DNA of 64,000 bases, from assembly GCA_965113315.1 (NCBI GenBank), contig OZ220366.1; one strand, given 5' to 3'. Source of the DNA: Podarcis vaucheri (lineage: Eukaryota). The translations under genes were made by a program, and so were the position numbers. A model generated the notes under the pieces. That model was given only the letters and a program-made list of their open reading frames with translations, did not search any database and was not told where the DNA came from. Every line of letters begins with the position of its first letter. The first letter of the stretch is position 1. Below, one piece after another: positions 57,182 through 64,000 of this stretch.

Positions 57182-59707
57182 TTAACTGCATAGTTTGAAA
57201 AACATCAGCCTAAATTAGTTTCAAATTCCATGACAAGGCTTAAGAAGTTTAACTATTCAAATGTGGCAACATTTTACTGAAATTATTTCCTTACAGAAAA
57301 GGCATGAAATGTGTAGACTGAGCAATCCTTGAGCAATCCTTATGCATGCATACATGTATTTTGCAACATGCAGATATTTATATATGTGTATGCATATATT
57401 CCCCCCCCATACATATATTTCTATACATATACATATATAATGTGAAAAGTCATGGTAAGTTACAAATTCCCAGCACAGGTACATATAAAAAGATAATCAT
57501 GTGACAATCAATATACAGCTTCCGAATTAATTTGTCACATTAATATCAAATTTAAAGTCAATCATCTATATCGTGCAAAAACTGTATAAAATCAGGTGAT
57601 GAGAACTGTATTGTGCACTTCCAAGGGCACACCCATTGCCCTGTTACATGTTAAAATGGGAGTGTTGTTTGCTTAAATGTATCTATATATATTTTATAAT
57701 CGGCTCACAATTCAAACCATGAGAGAAGAGAGAGTGTCTAAAGAATCCTTCCATTGTGCTTGGCAAAAAGATCTAATAGAAGAGGACTAACCTATCAAGT
57801 CTGCATTCCTAAACACTCTTACTTAAGGGAAAGTTCCACCAAACTCAATTTACCTCCAAGTAAACACACATAGGATGACACTGCAGAACTTTCATCCTAT
57901 ACTCTTTGAGGGCACCAGGCTTCAATGAGCACACAGAGTTCCTGCCACAAACATCTTTTAAATTGAAATATATGAGCCACTGGAGCTCCGTATACATATC
58001 AGTGCACACACACTGCTGCAGGAAGAGTGTCTTCTCCAAACAGAAAATGCTCCAATAAAATATCTAAGTCAAGAATTGCTTTCTAGTCTGCACAAATACA
58101 ATATAGTTGGTTTTTTTAAAAAAATGTACAAATTACTGAAATCAGAGGCAGGCAAATATGTCTTTCTGCTTTGATTTGACAGGATTCATAACCAAATGCC
58201 TCAAAAATATACCACCACAACAATTCAACGTGTCTAGAGAGTTACAGTTAATGGCATCTCACAGCTTGCCATCATATATATGCCGTGGCTACATCTTTAT
58301 AATTTAGGAGTGCTTCCCTAAAAATGCAATGGAAACTGAATTGGTTTGCGTTCAAAATTTTGATGTAGAAAACTGCCTAATGATGTGAGCTGAGAAGTTC
58401 CTGATTCAAATCATAACCATGAACTCCTATGATGGCCCTAGCTAAGCTACTATTTTCTTAGCTTCAAACCTTCAGGTGCAATATGGGGATATTAATACTG
58501 GCCTACCTTTCAGAGATCTTGCATGAATCACTGAGACAATGTATATGAATGCAATATATAAATGTTAAATTATCCTAATCTTCTATGTCAGGGTTGGTTT
58601 CTTTTTTAGCCAAGACCTAGACAAGAAGACAACAGTTTTATAAATTTGGGTAACTGCAGATTGTCAATATTTTGTGGGAAGGACTGAAGTACAAAGTGAG
58701 ATATATAAATTTGCGCAGCTGAAGTAGATTAGAGCACTTTCCCCCCTGCAGCAACCCATCCACACTTAAAAAATAACAGACTTTTTGCAGTTAGGAAAGC
58801 GACAGAGAAATGCATTGAAAAGTATGGAATGTACAACTGATCAATGAAAAGACATATAAACACCCCACAAGCAAATGAAGATGTATAGATTTTCATATAA
58901 TCTCCCCACAAACAAATCAGAAGAAATGCTCAATAATAACTGGACACAGTCTAACCAACCTTCTGTGCTTTCCACAAGCAAATCATAAACAAGATAGTCT
59001 GGAGGAGCTCTTTGCTTGTGCATCTAATTCTGGATTCATCTGAAAGTGTTTGTGACATATTGTGGATGTGATTGACAGAGATACTGATCACAAAAGACTG
59101 AAGGGGTGGGGAAGGATTGGCATAAAATTAGCCCTACATGTTTTATCTTTCTTCTAGATTTGTTAGTGTTTCCCATCCTCAGATATTGCTATCTCCAGCC
59201 TGATTGATGGAATGATCAGAGGAGTATTACTCTGATTTATATTATTTACAGACACCACAGAAGAACAGTCTGGACCACTGATGACACCAGTTGCAGCAAG
59301 TGGATTGTGCCTTCTTTAACACCTCTTTTCATATAGCCTGTTTATGTTGTCCCATTTGATCCACAGAAAAACTGAGGCTGCCCCACATGTAAAGCTTGGC
59401 TCCATTGCTAGAGTTTTGTTTATTGGTCATGTGTGAACATGACAAGAATTAAACTCAGGAACTGCAATGCAAGTTTTAACTTTTGGCCAAAGTCTTCAGA
59501 ATTTTGCACTAAGCGTTTGTAAAATCTGTCATGTGGAAAATAAGAAATTATTGTAAACTTGAGAAAGAAAAAGAAATAACTTGTTTTAGATAGGAAATGC
59601 TCTGAGATACAACCCTAACTCTCTTTCATAGCAGTTTTTTAAAATCCTTCCCCAAGCTGTATTGCAAATGAGAGCAAGGATGGCATAATACGAAAATAAA
59701 ATAAGTT

Positions 59708-59925
59708 AAGTTGCAAGAAAAGAGATTCCGACTAAACATTCAGAAAAACTTTCTGACAGTAAGAGCTGTTCAACAGTACAACAGACTCCCACAAGATGTG
59801 GTGGACTCTCCTTCCTTGGAGGTTTTTAAACAGAAGTTGGATGGCCATCCGTCATGGATGCTTTAGCTAAGATTCCTGCTTTGCAGGGGGGTTGAGTCCC
59901 TTCCAACTCTAAGAGTCTATGATTC
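59708..59925 (+). mobile_element. Older CR1 3'-end fragment
   Basis: Homologous to the end of ORF2 of the adjacent CR1 (ctaaacatt..gaa.aactt.ctgacagtaagagctgttc); ends ctatgattc. Confidence 0.85.
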
Positions 59926-59942
59926 CACTTATTCTGTTAAAT

Positions 59943-60139
59943 GTAAAGGTAAAGGGACCCCTGACCATTAGGTCCAGTCATGGCCAACTCTGGGGTTGCG
60001 GCACTCATCTCACTTTATTGGTTGAGGGAGCCGGTGTACAGCTTCTGGATCACATGGCCAGCAGGACTAAGCCACTTCTGGTGAACCAGAGCAGTGCATG
60101 GAAATGCTGTTTACCTTCCCGCCGGAATGGTACCTATTT
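59943..60139 (-). mobile_element. Sauria SINE, 3' part, interrupted by the CR1
   Basis: gtaaaggtaaagggacccct..., collinear with the 24232 copy until tacctattt, where the CR1 tail begins. Confidence 0.85.
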
Positions 60140-60218
60140 CATAGAATCATAGAATCATAGAGTTGGAAGAGACCACAAGGGCCATCGAGTCCAACCCCCT
60201 GCCAAGCAGGAAACACCA

Positions 60219-63140
60219 TCAGAGCACTCCTGACATATGGTTGTCAAGCCTCTGCTTAAAGACCTCCAAAGTAGGAGACTCCACCACACTCCTTGGCAGC
60301 AAATTCCATTGTCGAACAGCTCTTACTGTCAGGAAGTTCTTCCGAATGTTTAGGTGGAATCTTCTTTCTTGTAGTTTGGATCCATTGCTCCGTGTCCGCT
60401 TCTCTGGAGCAGCAGAAAACAACCTTTCTCCCTCCTCTATGTGACATCCTTTTATATATTTGAACATGGCTATCATATCACCCCTTAACCTCCTCTTCTC
60501 CAGGCTAAACATGCCCAGCTCCCTTAGCCGTTCCTCATAAGGCATCATTTCCAGGCCTTTGACCATTTTGGTTGCCCTCCTCTGGACACGTTCCAGTTTG
60601 TCAGTGTCCTTCTTGAATTGTGGTGCCCAGAACTGGACACAGTACTCCAGGTGTGGTCTGACCAGAGCAGAATACAGTGGCACTATTACTTCCCTTGATC
60701 TAGATGCTATACTCCTATTGATGCAGCCCAGAATTGCATTGGCTTTTTTAGCTGCCGCGTCACACTGTTGGCTCATGTCAAGTTTGTGGTCAACCAAGAC
60801 TCCTAGATCCTTTTCACATGTACTGCTCTCAAGCCAGGTGTCACCCATCTTGTATTTGTGCCTCTCATTTTTTTTGCCCAAGTGCAATACTTTACATTTC
60901 TCCCTGTTAAAATTCATCTTGTTTGTTTTGGCCCAGTTCTCTAATCTGTCAAGGTCGTTTTGAAGTGTGATCCTGTCCTCTGGGGTGTTAGCCACCCCTC
61001 CCAGTTTGGTGTCATCTGCAAATTTGATCAGGATGCCCTTGAGTCCATCATCCAAGTCGTTGATAAAGATGTTGAATAAGACCGGGCCCAAGACAGAACC
61101 CTGTGGCACCCCACTAGTCACTCTTCTCCAGGATGAAGAGGAACCATTGATGAGCACCCTTTGGGTTCGGTCAGTCAGCCAGTTACAAATCCACTGAGTG
61201 GTAGCATAGTCAAGACCGCATTTTACCAGCTTCTTTACAAGAATATCATGGGGCACCTTGTCAAATGCCTTGCTGAAATCAAGGTAGGCTACATCCACTG
61301 CGTTCCCTTCATCTACCAGGCTTGTAATTCTGTCAAAAAACGAGATCAGGTTAGTCTGACATGACTTATTTTTCAGAAATCCATGCTGACTATTGGTGAT
61401 CACAGCATTCCTTTCTAGGTGCTCACAGACTGTTTGCTTAATGATCTGCTCCAGAATCTTCCCTGCTATTGATGTCAGACTGACTGGGCGGTAATTATTT
61501 GGGTCCTCTCTTTTCCCCTTTTTGAAAATAGGGACAACATTTGCCCTCCTCCAGTCTGCCGGGACTTCGCCTGTTCTCCAGGAATTCTCAAAGATGACTG
61601 CCAGTGGTTCTGAGATCACATCTGCCAGTTCTTTTAATACTCTTGGATGCAGTTCATCTGGCCCTGGAGACTTGAATACATCTAAACTAGCCAAATATTC
61701 TTGTACTATCTCCTTAGTTATTCTGGGCTGTGTTTCCTTTGCTGAATCATTTGCTCCAAATTCTTCAGGTCGGGCATTGTTTTCTTTATCGGAGAAGACT
61801 GAGGCAAAGAAGGCATTGAGGAGTTCAGCCCTTTCTGTGTCCCCTGTTTGCATTTCACCATCTTCTCCTCTGAGTGACCCCACTGTTTCTTTGTTCTTCC
61901 TTTTGCTACGAACATACCCATAAAAGCCTTTTTTGTTGCTTTTAACCTCTCTAGCAAGCCTGAGTTCATTCTGTGCTTTAGCTTTTCTGACTTTGTGTCT
62001 ACACGTGCTGGCTATTTGTTTGAATTCCTCTTTGGTGGTTTCCCCCCTTTTCCATTTTTTGTACACATCCTTTTTTAATCTTAATTCAGTTAAAAGTTCT
62101 TTAGATAGCCACCCTGGCTTCTTTAGGCACCTTCCACGTTTCCGTCTCATTGGTATTGCCTGTCGTTGTGCTTTTACTATCTCCCTCTTAACAAACTCCC
62201 AGCCATCATGAACTCCCTTTCCTTTTAGTATTGCTGTCCATGGGATCTCACCCAGCACTTCCCTAAGTTTTATGAAGTCGGCTTTCTTAAAGTCAAGAAA
62301 TTGAGTCCTAGTATGCTTGGCTGCTCCTTTCCGCTGTATAGTAAACTTCAGAAGAGCATGATCACTCGCGCCTAATGATCCTTCCACATCTACCCCACTA
62401 ACCAGGTCATCAACATTGGTTAGGACCAGATCTAAAATGGCTGTTCCTCTTGTTGCTTCTCCCACTTTCTGGACAATGAAGTTGTCTGCAAGGCCAGTGA
62501 GGAATCTGTTTGACCTTATGCTCTTGGCTGAGTTTGACGTCCAACAAATATCCGGGTAATTGAAGTCCCCCATTACTACTATCTCCCTTCCTTTTGCATG
62601 CTTGGCCATCTGTTCCAGGAAGGCATCATCTATGTCCTCCGTTTGGCTTGGGGATCTATAGTAAACTCCCACAATGAGGTCTCTGTTATTCTTCTCTCCC
62701 TTAATTTTGACCCAAATGCTCTCACTTTGGCTTTGAGGTTCTAAATCTTGGATCTCTTCACAGGTATACACATCCCTGACATATAACGCCACTCCTCCTC
62801 CTTTCTTGTCTGGTCTGTTTCTCTGAAATAGTTTGTATCCCCCCATTATTACATTCCAATCGTGGGACTTATCCCACCAGGTTTCAGTGATGCCTATTAT
62901 GTCATATTTAGTTTGCTGTACCAAGAGCTCAAGCTCATCTTGTTTATTTCCCATGCTTTGCGCATTAGTGTAGAGACATTGAAGTCCATTAATCATTCCC
63001 CCGTGTCTCTTATTTAAGGATTTTTTCCTCCCACCACTAGGTCCGCGTGCTGTTTGCTCCATTTGGTCTATGACATTTGGATGATCATCTTCATTAATTG
63101 ATAGACTCCTACCTTCAGGAGCACTGTCTCCCTCCCCCAC
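60219..63140 (-). CDS. CR1 ORF2: APE endonuclease plus reverse transcriptase (frame open from 63224; first ATG at 63062)
   Basis: Endonuclease motifs YTNAQS, GITETW, GDFN, SDH; RT motifs [29 protein letters not shown]; no stops. Confidence 0.97.
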
Positions 63141-63145
63141 ATTAG

Positions 63146-64000
63146 TCAGTTTAAAGCCCTCCTGATGAGGTTTCTGAGATTTTTGGCAAAAACATTTCTC
63201 CCAACCGTTGTGAGGTGCAGCCCATCACTTGCCAGAAGTCCATCTTCAAGAAACTGCAGTCCGTGATCTAAGAATCCAAACCGTTCCTGTTTACACCATT
63301 TGCGAAGCCAGCTGTTCACTTCCACTATTTTCCCCTCTCTCCCTGGGCCACGTCGTTCAACTGGGAGGACAGACGAGATGACAATTTGTGCATTTAGTTG
63401 CTTCAATTTCCTGCCGAGAGCCTCGTAGTCTCTTTTGATCTTCTGGAGGCTATTGCTTGCAGTGTCATTGGTTCCCACATGAACCAAGAGGAAGGGGTAT
63501 TCGTCAGTGGGTTTTATGATTCCTTGCAGTCGTTCAGTTACATCTTGGATCTTAGCCCCGGGGAGACAGCACACTTCCCGAGACATCTTGTCAGGCCCAC
63601 AGATCACTGCTTCTGTTCCCCGCAGTAGGGAATCTCCTATCACCACTACACGCCTCCTCTTGGGTTTGGTCGGGGTTCTTCCGTGAGCTGTCCGTTCCAA
63701 GGTCACCTGCACATTCCCTGAGGACTGACTTTGCTGCTCGTCTTCATATACCTGATCGACTGTAATGAGGGAGAGATCCTCAAATGGAGTCTGCTCTTCG
63801 TCTTCCATGCTAGGGGAGAGGACCTCAAAGCGATTGTGTATTTCTAAACAATCAGAGTGAACCCTGGGCCTCCTACTTCTTTGAGTCACGTTTCTCCATA
63901 TATCTGGCTCCTGTGTTGGTGAACAAGCCTCCTTCTCAGGGGAGTCCCCTGTCTCCTCCTTGGTGGGGACGGTGTGCTCTGTTGCTTCCAAGAAGAGCTC
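63146..64000 (-). CDS. CR1 ORF1 (partial), SGNH/GDSL esterase domain
   Basis: Blocks GDSLL, LPGA, HVGTND and DGLHL; ends RRALN*. Confidence 0.92.

Follow-up and report, generated by a model that had tools for sequence, protein, structure and literature searches.

U_UUA_AAC, the heptamer of the coronavirus ORF1a/1b junction, is one of the most efficient eukaryotic slip sites known. In the -1 sites of plant luteoviruses and dianthoviruses the 0-frame stop directly follows the heptamer (GGGUUUU-UAG in barley yellow dwarf virus), and the nsp2TF frameshift of arteriviruses (PRRSV) is stimulated by a protein complex that binds a C-rich, unstructured motif some 10-11 nt downstream. How ORF2 is translated from the bicistronic RNA of LINE retrotransposons, including CR1, the dominant transposable element of birds and non-avian reptiles, is a long-standing question, and the only worked-out cases to our knowledge, SART1 and human L1, both point to reinitiation. 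PMC3708506 cites termination-reinitiation of ORF2 as shown for SART1, at UAAUG (Kojima, 2005), and as a proposal for human L1 (Alisch, 2006), and recoding in a non-LTR retrotransposon is represented by the gag frameshift of Drosophila HeT-A (Atkins et al., 2016, PMC5009743).

The window analyzed here, a stretch of 64,000 nucleotides from Podarcis vaucheri (contig OZ220366.1, assembly GCA_965113315.1), carries a young, intact CR1 LINE on its minus strand, with the 5' end of ORF1 beyond the window edge (Table 1). The element is a CR1-clade LINE with a type IV ORF1, the esterase class defined in PMC4120745. Its ORF1, present as a single copy in the window, encodes an SGNH/GDSL esterase domain (Pfam PF13472, 1.4e-09) and shares 95% identity with a Podarcis muralis protein of 360 aa, with reptile and bird CR1 ORF1 proteins as its homologues. 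The endonuclease (PF03372, 5.7e-17) and reverse transcriptase (PF00078, 8.2e-35) domains both lie in one 973-aa ORF (GTG at 63140 to the stop at 60219). The 3' end, a GTTGGA...TCCAAC hairpin at 60195-60162 followed by 2.9 copies of an 8-nt repeat at 60161-60139, matches the hairpin plus 8-nt microsatellite described as the CR1 3' structure in PMC8665684.

Table 1. Features of the CR1 copy and of its ORF1/ORF2 junction in the Podarcis vaucheri window.
Feature	Position	Strand	Remarks
CR1 ORF1, 3' part	63146..64000	-	281 codons + stop; GDSL/SGNH esterase type
ORF1 stop codon TGA	63146..63148	-	directly 3' of the heptamer
Slippery heptamer T_TTA_AAC (U_UUA_AAC)	63149..63155	-	in phase with ORF1
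G-tract GGGGGAGGGAG	63128..63138	-	starts 10 nt past the heptamer; candidate stimulatory element
Weak local hairpin GCTCCT / AGGAGT	63105..63122	-	exists in the sequence; neither significant nor conserved
First in-frame ATG of the ORF2 frame	63060..63062	-	+93 from the heptamer; context CAAATGG
ORF2 frame	60219..63155	-	-1 relative to ORF1; heptamer to stop TGA at 60221-60219
CR1 3' end	60139..60195	-	hairpin + 8-nt microsatellite

On the minus strand ORF1 ends in AGG GCT TTA AAC TGA, where the T of GCT places TTTAAAC in X_XXY_YYZ phase immediately before the stop. The -1 frame reads TTT AAA CTG ACT AAT GTG GGG... across the junction and continues without a stop into the 973-aa ORF; it is open already from 63224, downstream of a TAA at 63227-63225, and thereby overlaps ORF1 by 79 nt. 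The original prediction had described precisely this arrangement, including the absence of an ATG before 63062 and a G-rich block about 10 nt after the heptamer, and each of these elements was recovered on inspection of the minus strand, the block being GGGGGAGGGAG. An in-phase XXXYYYZ is expected by chance at about 1/256 at one given position and at about 0.1 anywhere in the 79-nt overlap, so the heptamer is only suggestive in a single copy; it is its conservation across families that takes it beyond chance.

To compare the junction at the nucleotide level, we scanned metagenome contigs and obtained 80 loci with a CR1 ORF1, whose closest named relatives are avian (Calypte, Grus, Zosterops). 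Scans of genome contigs and viral contigs with an ORF1 alignment found no CR1, and a second scan of genome contigs returned bacterial SGNH genes together with one unrelated LINE-like contig in a MAG, without a canonical heptamer. All comparisons were made on actual copies. A large majority of the loci extending to the end of ORF1 have the exact TTTAAAC, with TAG, TGA or TAA immediately after it. Twelve representatives were aligned, namely the lizard copy and 11 bird-type CR1 copies from at least seven families, with ORF1s 41-52% identical to that of the lizard, and the only blocks invariant in 12/12 are C-TTTAAAC-T and GGGG at +18 to +21. The T after the heptamer is the first base of the stop codon, which is fixed in position and varies in identity (TGA, TAG, TAA), and the invariance of GGGG takes in a synonymous Gly third position. 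All three synonymous sites of the heptamer are fixed, compared with none of 15 upstream third positions (mean majority frequency 0.57), although these are not independent trials, given the common ancestry of the families. Whichever residue precedes Leu, whether Ala (GCT), Ser (TCT), Thr (ACT) or Asp (GAT), its codon keeps T as the third base. TTA makes up 8.7% of Leu codons in the compared ORF1s, and for a protein that ends in x-Leu-Asn the chance of encountering T|TTA|AAC is about 0.01 in each family.

The endonuclease lies in the -1 frame in every family examined, with spacers between heptamer and endonuclease of 99, 144, 171, 180, 216, 252 or 273 nt, and in intact copies this interval is free of stops. 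In many avian copies a stop in the -1 frame lies just 3-6 nt upstream of the heptamer, meaning that the ORF2 frame opens at the heptamer itself. The comparison across families bore out what the original prediction had named as its comparative test, with the synonymous sites of the heptamer, the -1 register and the stop-free path to the endonuclease all retained. The anatomy of the junction, its frame relations and its nucleotide conservation are direct observations on these copies.

Protein C-termini extend the comparison to other vertebrates. In a set of 154 esterase ORF1 proteins that have a natural end and span sharks, frogs, turtles, squamates, crocodilians and birds, Leu-Asn are the last two residues in 111, and this end lies exactly 26 residues past the DGxHL motif; for turtles, frogs and sharks the comparison covers protein ends, on which the deep conservation is based. 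In turtles, a Gopherus gene model crosses the junction as ...VFKLGIWG, and only T-TTA-AA can encode both Phe-Lys in the -1 frame and Leu-Asn in the 0 frame. The ORF1 ends of more distant families are Gln-Gly-Asn or Ser-Lys-Asn, which fit other classical heptamers.

Start codons in the ORF2 frame are conserved across families neither in presence nor in position. Three representatives (L014, L052 and L067) have an AUG at +12, 2 nt after the ORF1 stop, and several other avian representatives have GUG or UUG at +12 or +15. About half of the copies of family A have an AUG at +66, where GTG and ATG alternate at a CpG. In subfamily A1, as in families C and D, the frame reaches the catalytic Asn of the endonuclease without any AUG. 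A favorable context, with A at -3 and G at +4, surrounds the lizard AUG at 63062. In the lizard, as well as in families A, B, C and D, an AUG is either lacking or far from the ORF1 stop, and the AUG, GUG and UUG codons found near the stop elsewhere allow for coupled reinitiation in some members of the clade. Constraint on the spacer in the ORF2 frame is only weak: a Nei-Gojobori test of low power on the 30-codon avian spacer gave a pN/pS of 0.63 in this frame vs. 0.94 and 0.79 in the other two.

For the lizard sequence past the site, a single-sequence fold was no better than those of shuffled sequences (z = +1.76), and RNAalifold on 16 avian copies gave -9 kcal/mol with no covariation. Similarly, a crude scan for H-type pseudoknots outperformed shuffles in just one avian family, and in several families it found no stem of at least 4 bp starting 5-12 nt after the site. 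The pairings originally proposed, GCTCCT/AGGAGT or GGAG/CTCC plus AGAC/GTCT, find no support in these analyses. Instead of a stem-loop or pseudoknot 5-9 nt downstream, as in a typical frameshift cassette, the junction has a conserved G-tract at 10 nt, and the conserved downstream feature is the G-run itself, for which no pairing is predicted. Two other roles considered for the G-tract were rejected: a G-quadruplex by eye, with just two G-tracts of at least three within reach, and a TURBS-like pairing with 18S rRNA on account of its inconsistent geometry to the candidate start codons.

Collectively, the in-phase heptamer, the -1 ORF open across it and the conservation of its synonymous sites, all of which characterize known frameshift cassettes, suggest that the CR1 ORF1/ORF2 junction is probably a conserved programmed -1 ribosomal frameshift site. 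Most ribosomes would terminate at the UGA that adjoins ...GCU UUA AAC and set free an ORF1 protein of the esterase type. In a minority, the tRNAs on UUA (P site) and AAC (A site) would slip back one base and re-pair on UUU AAA. These ribosomes would go on in the ORF2 frame and produce an ORF1-endonuclease-reverse transcriptase fusion, expected at about 150 kDa and with ...A-L-N-L-T-N-V-G... as the predicted junction peptide, an arrangement that, much like gag-pol, would set a low ratio of ORF2 to ORF1 and tie ORF2 physically to ORF1 and to its own RNA. We infer the slippage itself and its efficiency from the sequence comparison, and likewise a role for the G-tract 10 nt downstream as the likely stimulator, probably by a means other than a stem-loop. 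Of the original proposal of a gag-pol-style fusion at U_UUA_AAC, the comparative part has stood, in the heptamer, the register and the distribution of AUG codons, and the downstream pairings have fallen away. In the full-text literature searched, no report of a CR1 slippery site or of CR1 frameshifting was found, although an earlier mention in Haas (1997) or Kajikawa (1997) is possible.

Alternatively, ribosomes could begin a separate ORF2 protein past the ORF1 stop, through termination-reinitiation or some other unconventional mode of initiation, for example with a start at the AUG at 63062 or the near-cognate GUG at 63140, a G-tract that tethers the post-termination 40S subunit, and a heptamer kept for some other reason. 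The invariant position of the ORF1 stop across families, the AUG 2 nt past it in three avian representatives and GUG or UUG at +12 or +15 in others, the well-placed lizard AUG, the weak coding constraint in the spacer and the failure of the fold, RNAalifold and the H-type scan to find a classical stimulatory structure are all consistent with such a mechanism, and LINE ORF2 translation is treated as reinitiation or as unclear in the literature (PMC3708506). Reinitiation nevertheless leaves unexplained why all seven bases of the heptamer stay fixed, a rare Leu codon and three synonymous sites among them, amid neighbouring synonymous sites that vary, and an independent start needs no strict -1 register over seven spacer lengths. 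Moreover, neither an AUG nor, at +12 or +15, a GUG or UUG precedes the essential N-terminus of the endonuclease in subfamily A1, the largest avian family, or in families C and D, and the G-tract lies after the AUG at +12 yet 45-75 nt before the other candidate starts, an inconsistent geometry. On this evidence we consider a separately initiated ORF2 protein unlikely.

The conserved block could also be a signal unrelated to recoding, in which C-TTTAAAC-stop and the G-tract serve as a binding site for the ORF1 protein or the reverse transcriptase, or the ORF1 C-terminal tripeptide has a function of its own. The very wide conservation of Ala/Thr-Leu-Asn-stop among proteins and the lack of the structure typical of a frameshift cassette in our searches would suit this explanation, but a protein constraint allows six Leu and two Asn codons, whereas just TTA and AAC occur in 12/12, and it does not account for a fixed third-base T before a Leu whose preceding residue varies. 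An efficient slip site, in the right phase and in the right place for ORF2, would be an unlikely triple coincidence, and the fit of the Gln-Gly-Asn and Ser-Lys-Asn ends to other classical heptamers also argues against a non-recoding signal, which we regard as improbable. Still less credible, and close to negligible, is the idea that transcriptional slippage or editing changes the frame in the RNA, or that the lizard copy has merely acquired a 1-nt indel since its descent from a single-ORF element. Nothing specific favors it beyond the commonness of indels in decayed LINE copies, the heptamer has no long homopolymer, and the two-frame layout occurs in every family examined. In addition, RNA and DNA reads (raw RNA-seq from a related lacertid; contigs of two species) showed no indel of at least 10% near the junction, the only indels listed being those at 61540 and 62054. 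None of the 40 best-supported variant positions falls within 63096-63196, although 139 further variant positions exist and invariance among lizard copies is not implied. RNA reads were about equal on both strands and do not indicate dedicated sense transcription.

Programmed -1 frameshifting at this junction could have a wider reach, in which all esterase-ORF1 CR1 elements of jawed vertebrates use the -1 fusion, an unpaired G-tract with a bound protein stimulates it, and the sister lineages with Gln-Gly-Asn and Ser-Lys-Asn ends behave alike. The protein on the G-tract would then be a host protein or the ORF1 protein itself, the latter leading to feedback control, and the sister lineages would use G_GGA_AAC and A_AAA_AAC, respectively. 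This extension is doubtful.

Compared with retrovirus/LTR gag-pol and coronavirus ORF1a/1b, the CR1 junction similarly has a heptamer of this class in phase with a polymerase ORF in the -1 frame, and the frameshift model similarly has an upstream structural or RNA-binding ORF and a minority fusion that sets stoichiometry, as would be expected for CR1. It differs from both in belonging to a non-LTR LINE without a capsid, in the 0-frame stop adjoining the heptamer, and in having an apparently unpaired G-tract at 10 nt and no detected stem-loop or pseudoknot 5-9 nt downstream. Luteovirus and dianthovirus sites share the stop-adjacent heptamer but need adjacent structure as well as long-distance pairing, and nothing comparable was found in CR1. 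A conserved, apparently single-stranded homopurine/homopyrimidine motif about 10 nt downstream, with no RNA structure, is common to CR1 and PRRSV nsp2TF; however, the PRRSV motif is C-rich and bound by nsp1beta and a poly(C)-binding protein, whereas the CR1 motif is G-rich and has no known binder, making this an analogy only. With SART1 and human L1, CR1 has in common a bicistronic LINE RNA, an ORF2 without independent cap-dependent access and a fixed stop near the ORF2 start region, but unlike them it has no conserved AUG near that stop, an in-phase slippery heptamer and an ORF2 that is always in the -1 frame. HeT-A, like CR1 in the frameshift model, is a case of recoding in a non-LTR retrotransposon, although its shift lies inside gag and not at an ORF1/ORF2 junction, and it is an insect telomeric element without its own reverse transcriptase.

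For the annotation of intact CR1 copies, the heptamer, the adjacent stop and ORF2 in the -1 frame provide a rule. If the junction is indeed a frameshift site, CR1 would gain a different and directly testable expression logic, one that predicts an ORF1-ORF2 fusion protein and a fixed ratio of the two proteins and that would explain the absence of a start codon in many CR1 ORF2s. It would also be an ancient case of -1 frameshifting that vertebrate genomes encode at very high copy number, and one whose stimulator, a G-tract, may be unusual.

On the minus strand of the window, the final codons of the CR1 ORF1 read AGG GCT TTA AAC TGA. As the original prediction held, TTTAAAC lies in T_TTA_AAC phase directly before the ORF1 stop, and the -1 frame, open from 63224 and first meeting an ATG at 63062 (minus strand), is that of ORF2; every element of this sequence observation proved correct. 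Stop codons are absent between 63224 and the 973-aa ORF2, and the element ends in the hairpin and microsatellite structure described for CR1 (PMC8665684).

Features of the CR1 element and its ORF1-ORF2 junction in the window
Feature	Position	Strand	Evidence or remark
CR1 LINE	60139-64000	minus	5' end runs off window
ORF1, 281 codons visible, GDSL/SGNH esterase domain	stop at 63148-63146	minus	Pfam PF13472, 1.4e-09
Slippery heptamer TTTAAAC, T_TTA_AAC phase	63155-63149	minus	sequence
ORF2, 973 aa	stop end 60219	minus	AP-endonuclease 5.7e-17, reverse transcriptase 8.2e-35
CR1 3' hairpin	60195-60162	minus	terminates element together with microsatellite
8-nt microsatellite	60161-60139	minus	element end, after hairpin

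A Podarcis muralis protein shares 95% identity with the window ORF1, which places the genome among the lacertid lizards. Sequence data (reads and contigs) from two lacertid species show a young and very abundant family: identity reaches 99% or more for about half of the contigs in the best run, and depth climbs toward the CR1 3' end, as is usual for 5'-truncated copies. At window position 63227, the plus-strand A (minus-strand T of a TAA) is G in most family copies, including nearly all second-species contigs and RNA reads and about half in the first species; this G removes a -1 frame stop, so that the ORF2 frame of typical copies is open further upstream than here. Right after the microsatellite, minus-strand sequence at 59700-60138 looks like another interspersed repeat, and a further CR1-like 3' fragment seems present near 59750-59930.

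Since an in-phase XXXYYYZ heptamer has a chance of about 1/256 at a given position, a single copy is suggestive at best and the test must be comparative. Scanning metagenome contigs with an alignment of 28 ORF1 homologues yielded 80 loci of host DNA, with ORF1s 41-52% identical to the lizard ORF1, avian closest named relatives (Calypte, Grus, Zosterops, Dryobates) and at least seven families. Nearly every locus reaching the ORF1 end has exact TTTAAAC followed immediately by a stop, the few exceptions being decayed copies with a single-base variant. All comparisons used actual copies; 12 representatives (the lizard copy and a real copy from each family) were compared in ungapped register. Between -30 and +50, counted from the heptamer, their only invariant blocks are C-TTTAAAC-T, ending on the first base of a stop that varies between TGA, TAG and TAA, and GGGG at +18 to +21. 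All three synonymous positions within the heptamer are fixed in 12/12 representatives, whereas none of 15 upstream third-codon positions is (mean majority frequency 0.57). The residue preceding Leu varies (Ala, Ser, Thr, Asp) and the third base of its codon is always T. Only 8.7% of the Leu codons across these ORF1s are TTA; for a protein that ends x-Leu-Asn, T_TTA_AAC is expected in ~1% of families, which, being related by ancestry, are not independent trials. What the comparison shows is that no synonymous heptamer change has become fixed over a divergence that randomised the neighbouring synonymous sites.

Every family examined has its endonuclease domain in frame -1 with respect to ORF1, at 99, 144, 171 (lizard), 180, 216, 252 or 273 nt from the heptamer. 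Between heptamer and endonuclease in family A, stops interrupt the -1 frame in 0/31 copies and the other two frames in 30/31 and 31/31. Synonymous conservation, constant register and open spacer all agree with the original prediction. The -1 frame of many avian copies is closed by a stop just 3-6 nt before the heptamer, which is therefore where their ORF2 frame begins to be open. No in-frame AUG is shared across families: one falls at +12 in three representatives (contig loci L014, L052 and L067), at +93 in the lizard, and at +66 in only 15 of the 31 family A copies, where the codon switches between GTG and ATG at a CpG, the GTG form marking subfamily A1. In that subfamily, as in families C and D, no AUG precedes the endonuclease; the next one is downstream of the conserved Y-T-N-A motif, which by homology to other AP-endonucleases contains a catalytic Asn, and would therefore start an incomplete enzyme. 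Two apparently intact avian-type copies in contigs of ERZ791614 (L052:815 onward and L067) contain an ORF2 without stops for 953 and for 994 or more codons, and an AUG 2 nt beyond the ORF1 stop; in L067, ORF1 is nevertheless interrupted by an in-frame stop a little upstream of the heptamer.

Deeper conservation was read from proteins rather than DNA. Among 154 esterase ORF1 proteins that end naturally, Leu-Asn closes 111, mostly exactly 26 residues past the DGxHL motif, in sharks, rays, frogs, turtles, squamates, crocodilians and birds; the residue before it nearly always has codons that may end in T. One Gopherus gene model crosses the junction as ...V-F-K-L-G-I-W-G; because the -1 frame gives F-K where the 0 frame gives L-N, the DNA must be T-TTA-AA, and turtles hence share the heptamer. 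Back-translated sea-turtle read-through peptides allow for a G-run at the corresponding position. More distant ORF1 proteins from ENA, JGI and Logan contigs (including P0169, P0188, P0190, P0196, P0208, P0211, P0217, P0231 and P0242) end in Gly-Asn (13; 12 Gln-Gly-Asn, one Ser-Gly-Asn) or Ser-Lys-Asn (three), which at the protein level would fit G_GGA_AAC and A_AAA_AAC, other classical slip sites, before the stop. The Asn end is absent from zebrafish ZfL2-1-like L2 ORF1s.

Related sequences also turned up under other labels. A Klebsiella pneumoniae SGNH/GDSL hydrolase (P0037, 2.9-kb contig), 58% identical to the window ORF1 and ending in R-R-A-L-N, is almost certainly vertebrate contamination of a bacterial assembly. 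Numerous gene models of reptiles and fish that bear host-gene names such as NUBP1, shisa-4, HAUS7, KCNH6, beta-parvin and RPS24, or even 'Replicase polyprotein 1a' (P0023, P0039, P0046, P0050, P0055, P0056, P0069, P0074, P0078, P0100, P0109), contain a CR1 ORF1 esterase and appear to be annotation chimeras in which host exons are joined to CR1 copies. A contig labelled Sedimenticola MAG (JBEVXT010000007.1), probably eukaryote host DNA binned into a bacterial MAG, carries a LINE-like pair (L081:584-2629 and downstream), a 681-aa ORF with an SGNH-like part followed in the -1 frame by an endonuclease-like ORF; the canonical heptamer is absent at their junction.

The downstream pairings originally proposed occur in the lizard sequence, without significance or conservation. 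Shuffles fold better than the 109 nt past the lizard heptamer (z = +1.76), RNAalifold on 16 avian copies gave -9 kcal/mol without covariation, and in a crude scan for H-type stem pairs 5-12 nt past the site 8/9 representatives were no better than shuffles; four avian ones (L044, L011, L036, L014) had no stem, so the G-tract seems to avoid partners. Spacer pN/pS was 0.63 in the ORF2 frame versus 0.94 and 0.79 in the others, a weak coding constraint beside clear controls (ORF1 end 0.31, endonuclease start 0.28). A 1-nt deletion compensated ~10 nt later, which distinguishes two intact-looking avian copies, is consistent with spacer translation and also with initiation at the +12 AUG that they carry. 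At the junction, RNA reads showed no indel at 10% or more, eliminating transcriptional slippage as the cause but saying nothing about translation.

We consider it probable that U_UUA_AAC, with an adjacent 0-frame stop and the G-tract 10 nt downstream, is a programmed -1 frameshift site. The main rival, termination-reinitiation at an AUG or near-cognate codon further downstream, matches the families with a +12 AUG and agrees with the general LINE literature (PMC3708506), but it appears unlikely, as it leaves the nucleotide-level invariance of the heptamer, the AUG-less families and the constant -1 register unexplained. That C-TTTAAAC is a signal unrelated to recoding is very improbable, requiring a top-ranked slip site to stand in the correct phase and place by pure coincidence.

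Heptamer and ORF logic are the same at the CR1 junction as in retroviral gag-pol and coronavirus 1a/1b frameshifting; of the canonical -1 cassette, the heptamer, frame and conservation were found and the downstream structure was not. Luteovirus sites have a stop immediately after the heptamer, and the arterivirus site is protein-dependent, with a single-stranded motif at ~10 nt; by analogy, the adjoining CR1 stop may recall the former and the motif at ~10 nt the latter. The only non-LTR elements in a frameshifting review are HeT-A and TART (PMC5009743), and frameshifting, overlap or a slippery site goes unmentioned in the Jockey-superfamily ORF1 survey, the ZfL2-1 esterase structure paper, the 2014 and 2021 CR1 surveys and the 2026 CR1-group survey, an older mention being possible. 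Under programmed frameshifting, ribosomes would shift -1 at U_UUA_AAC ahead of the adjacent stop, and CR1 would make an ORF1-ORF2 fusion protein.
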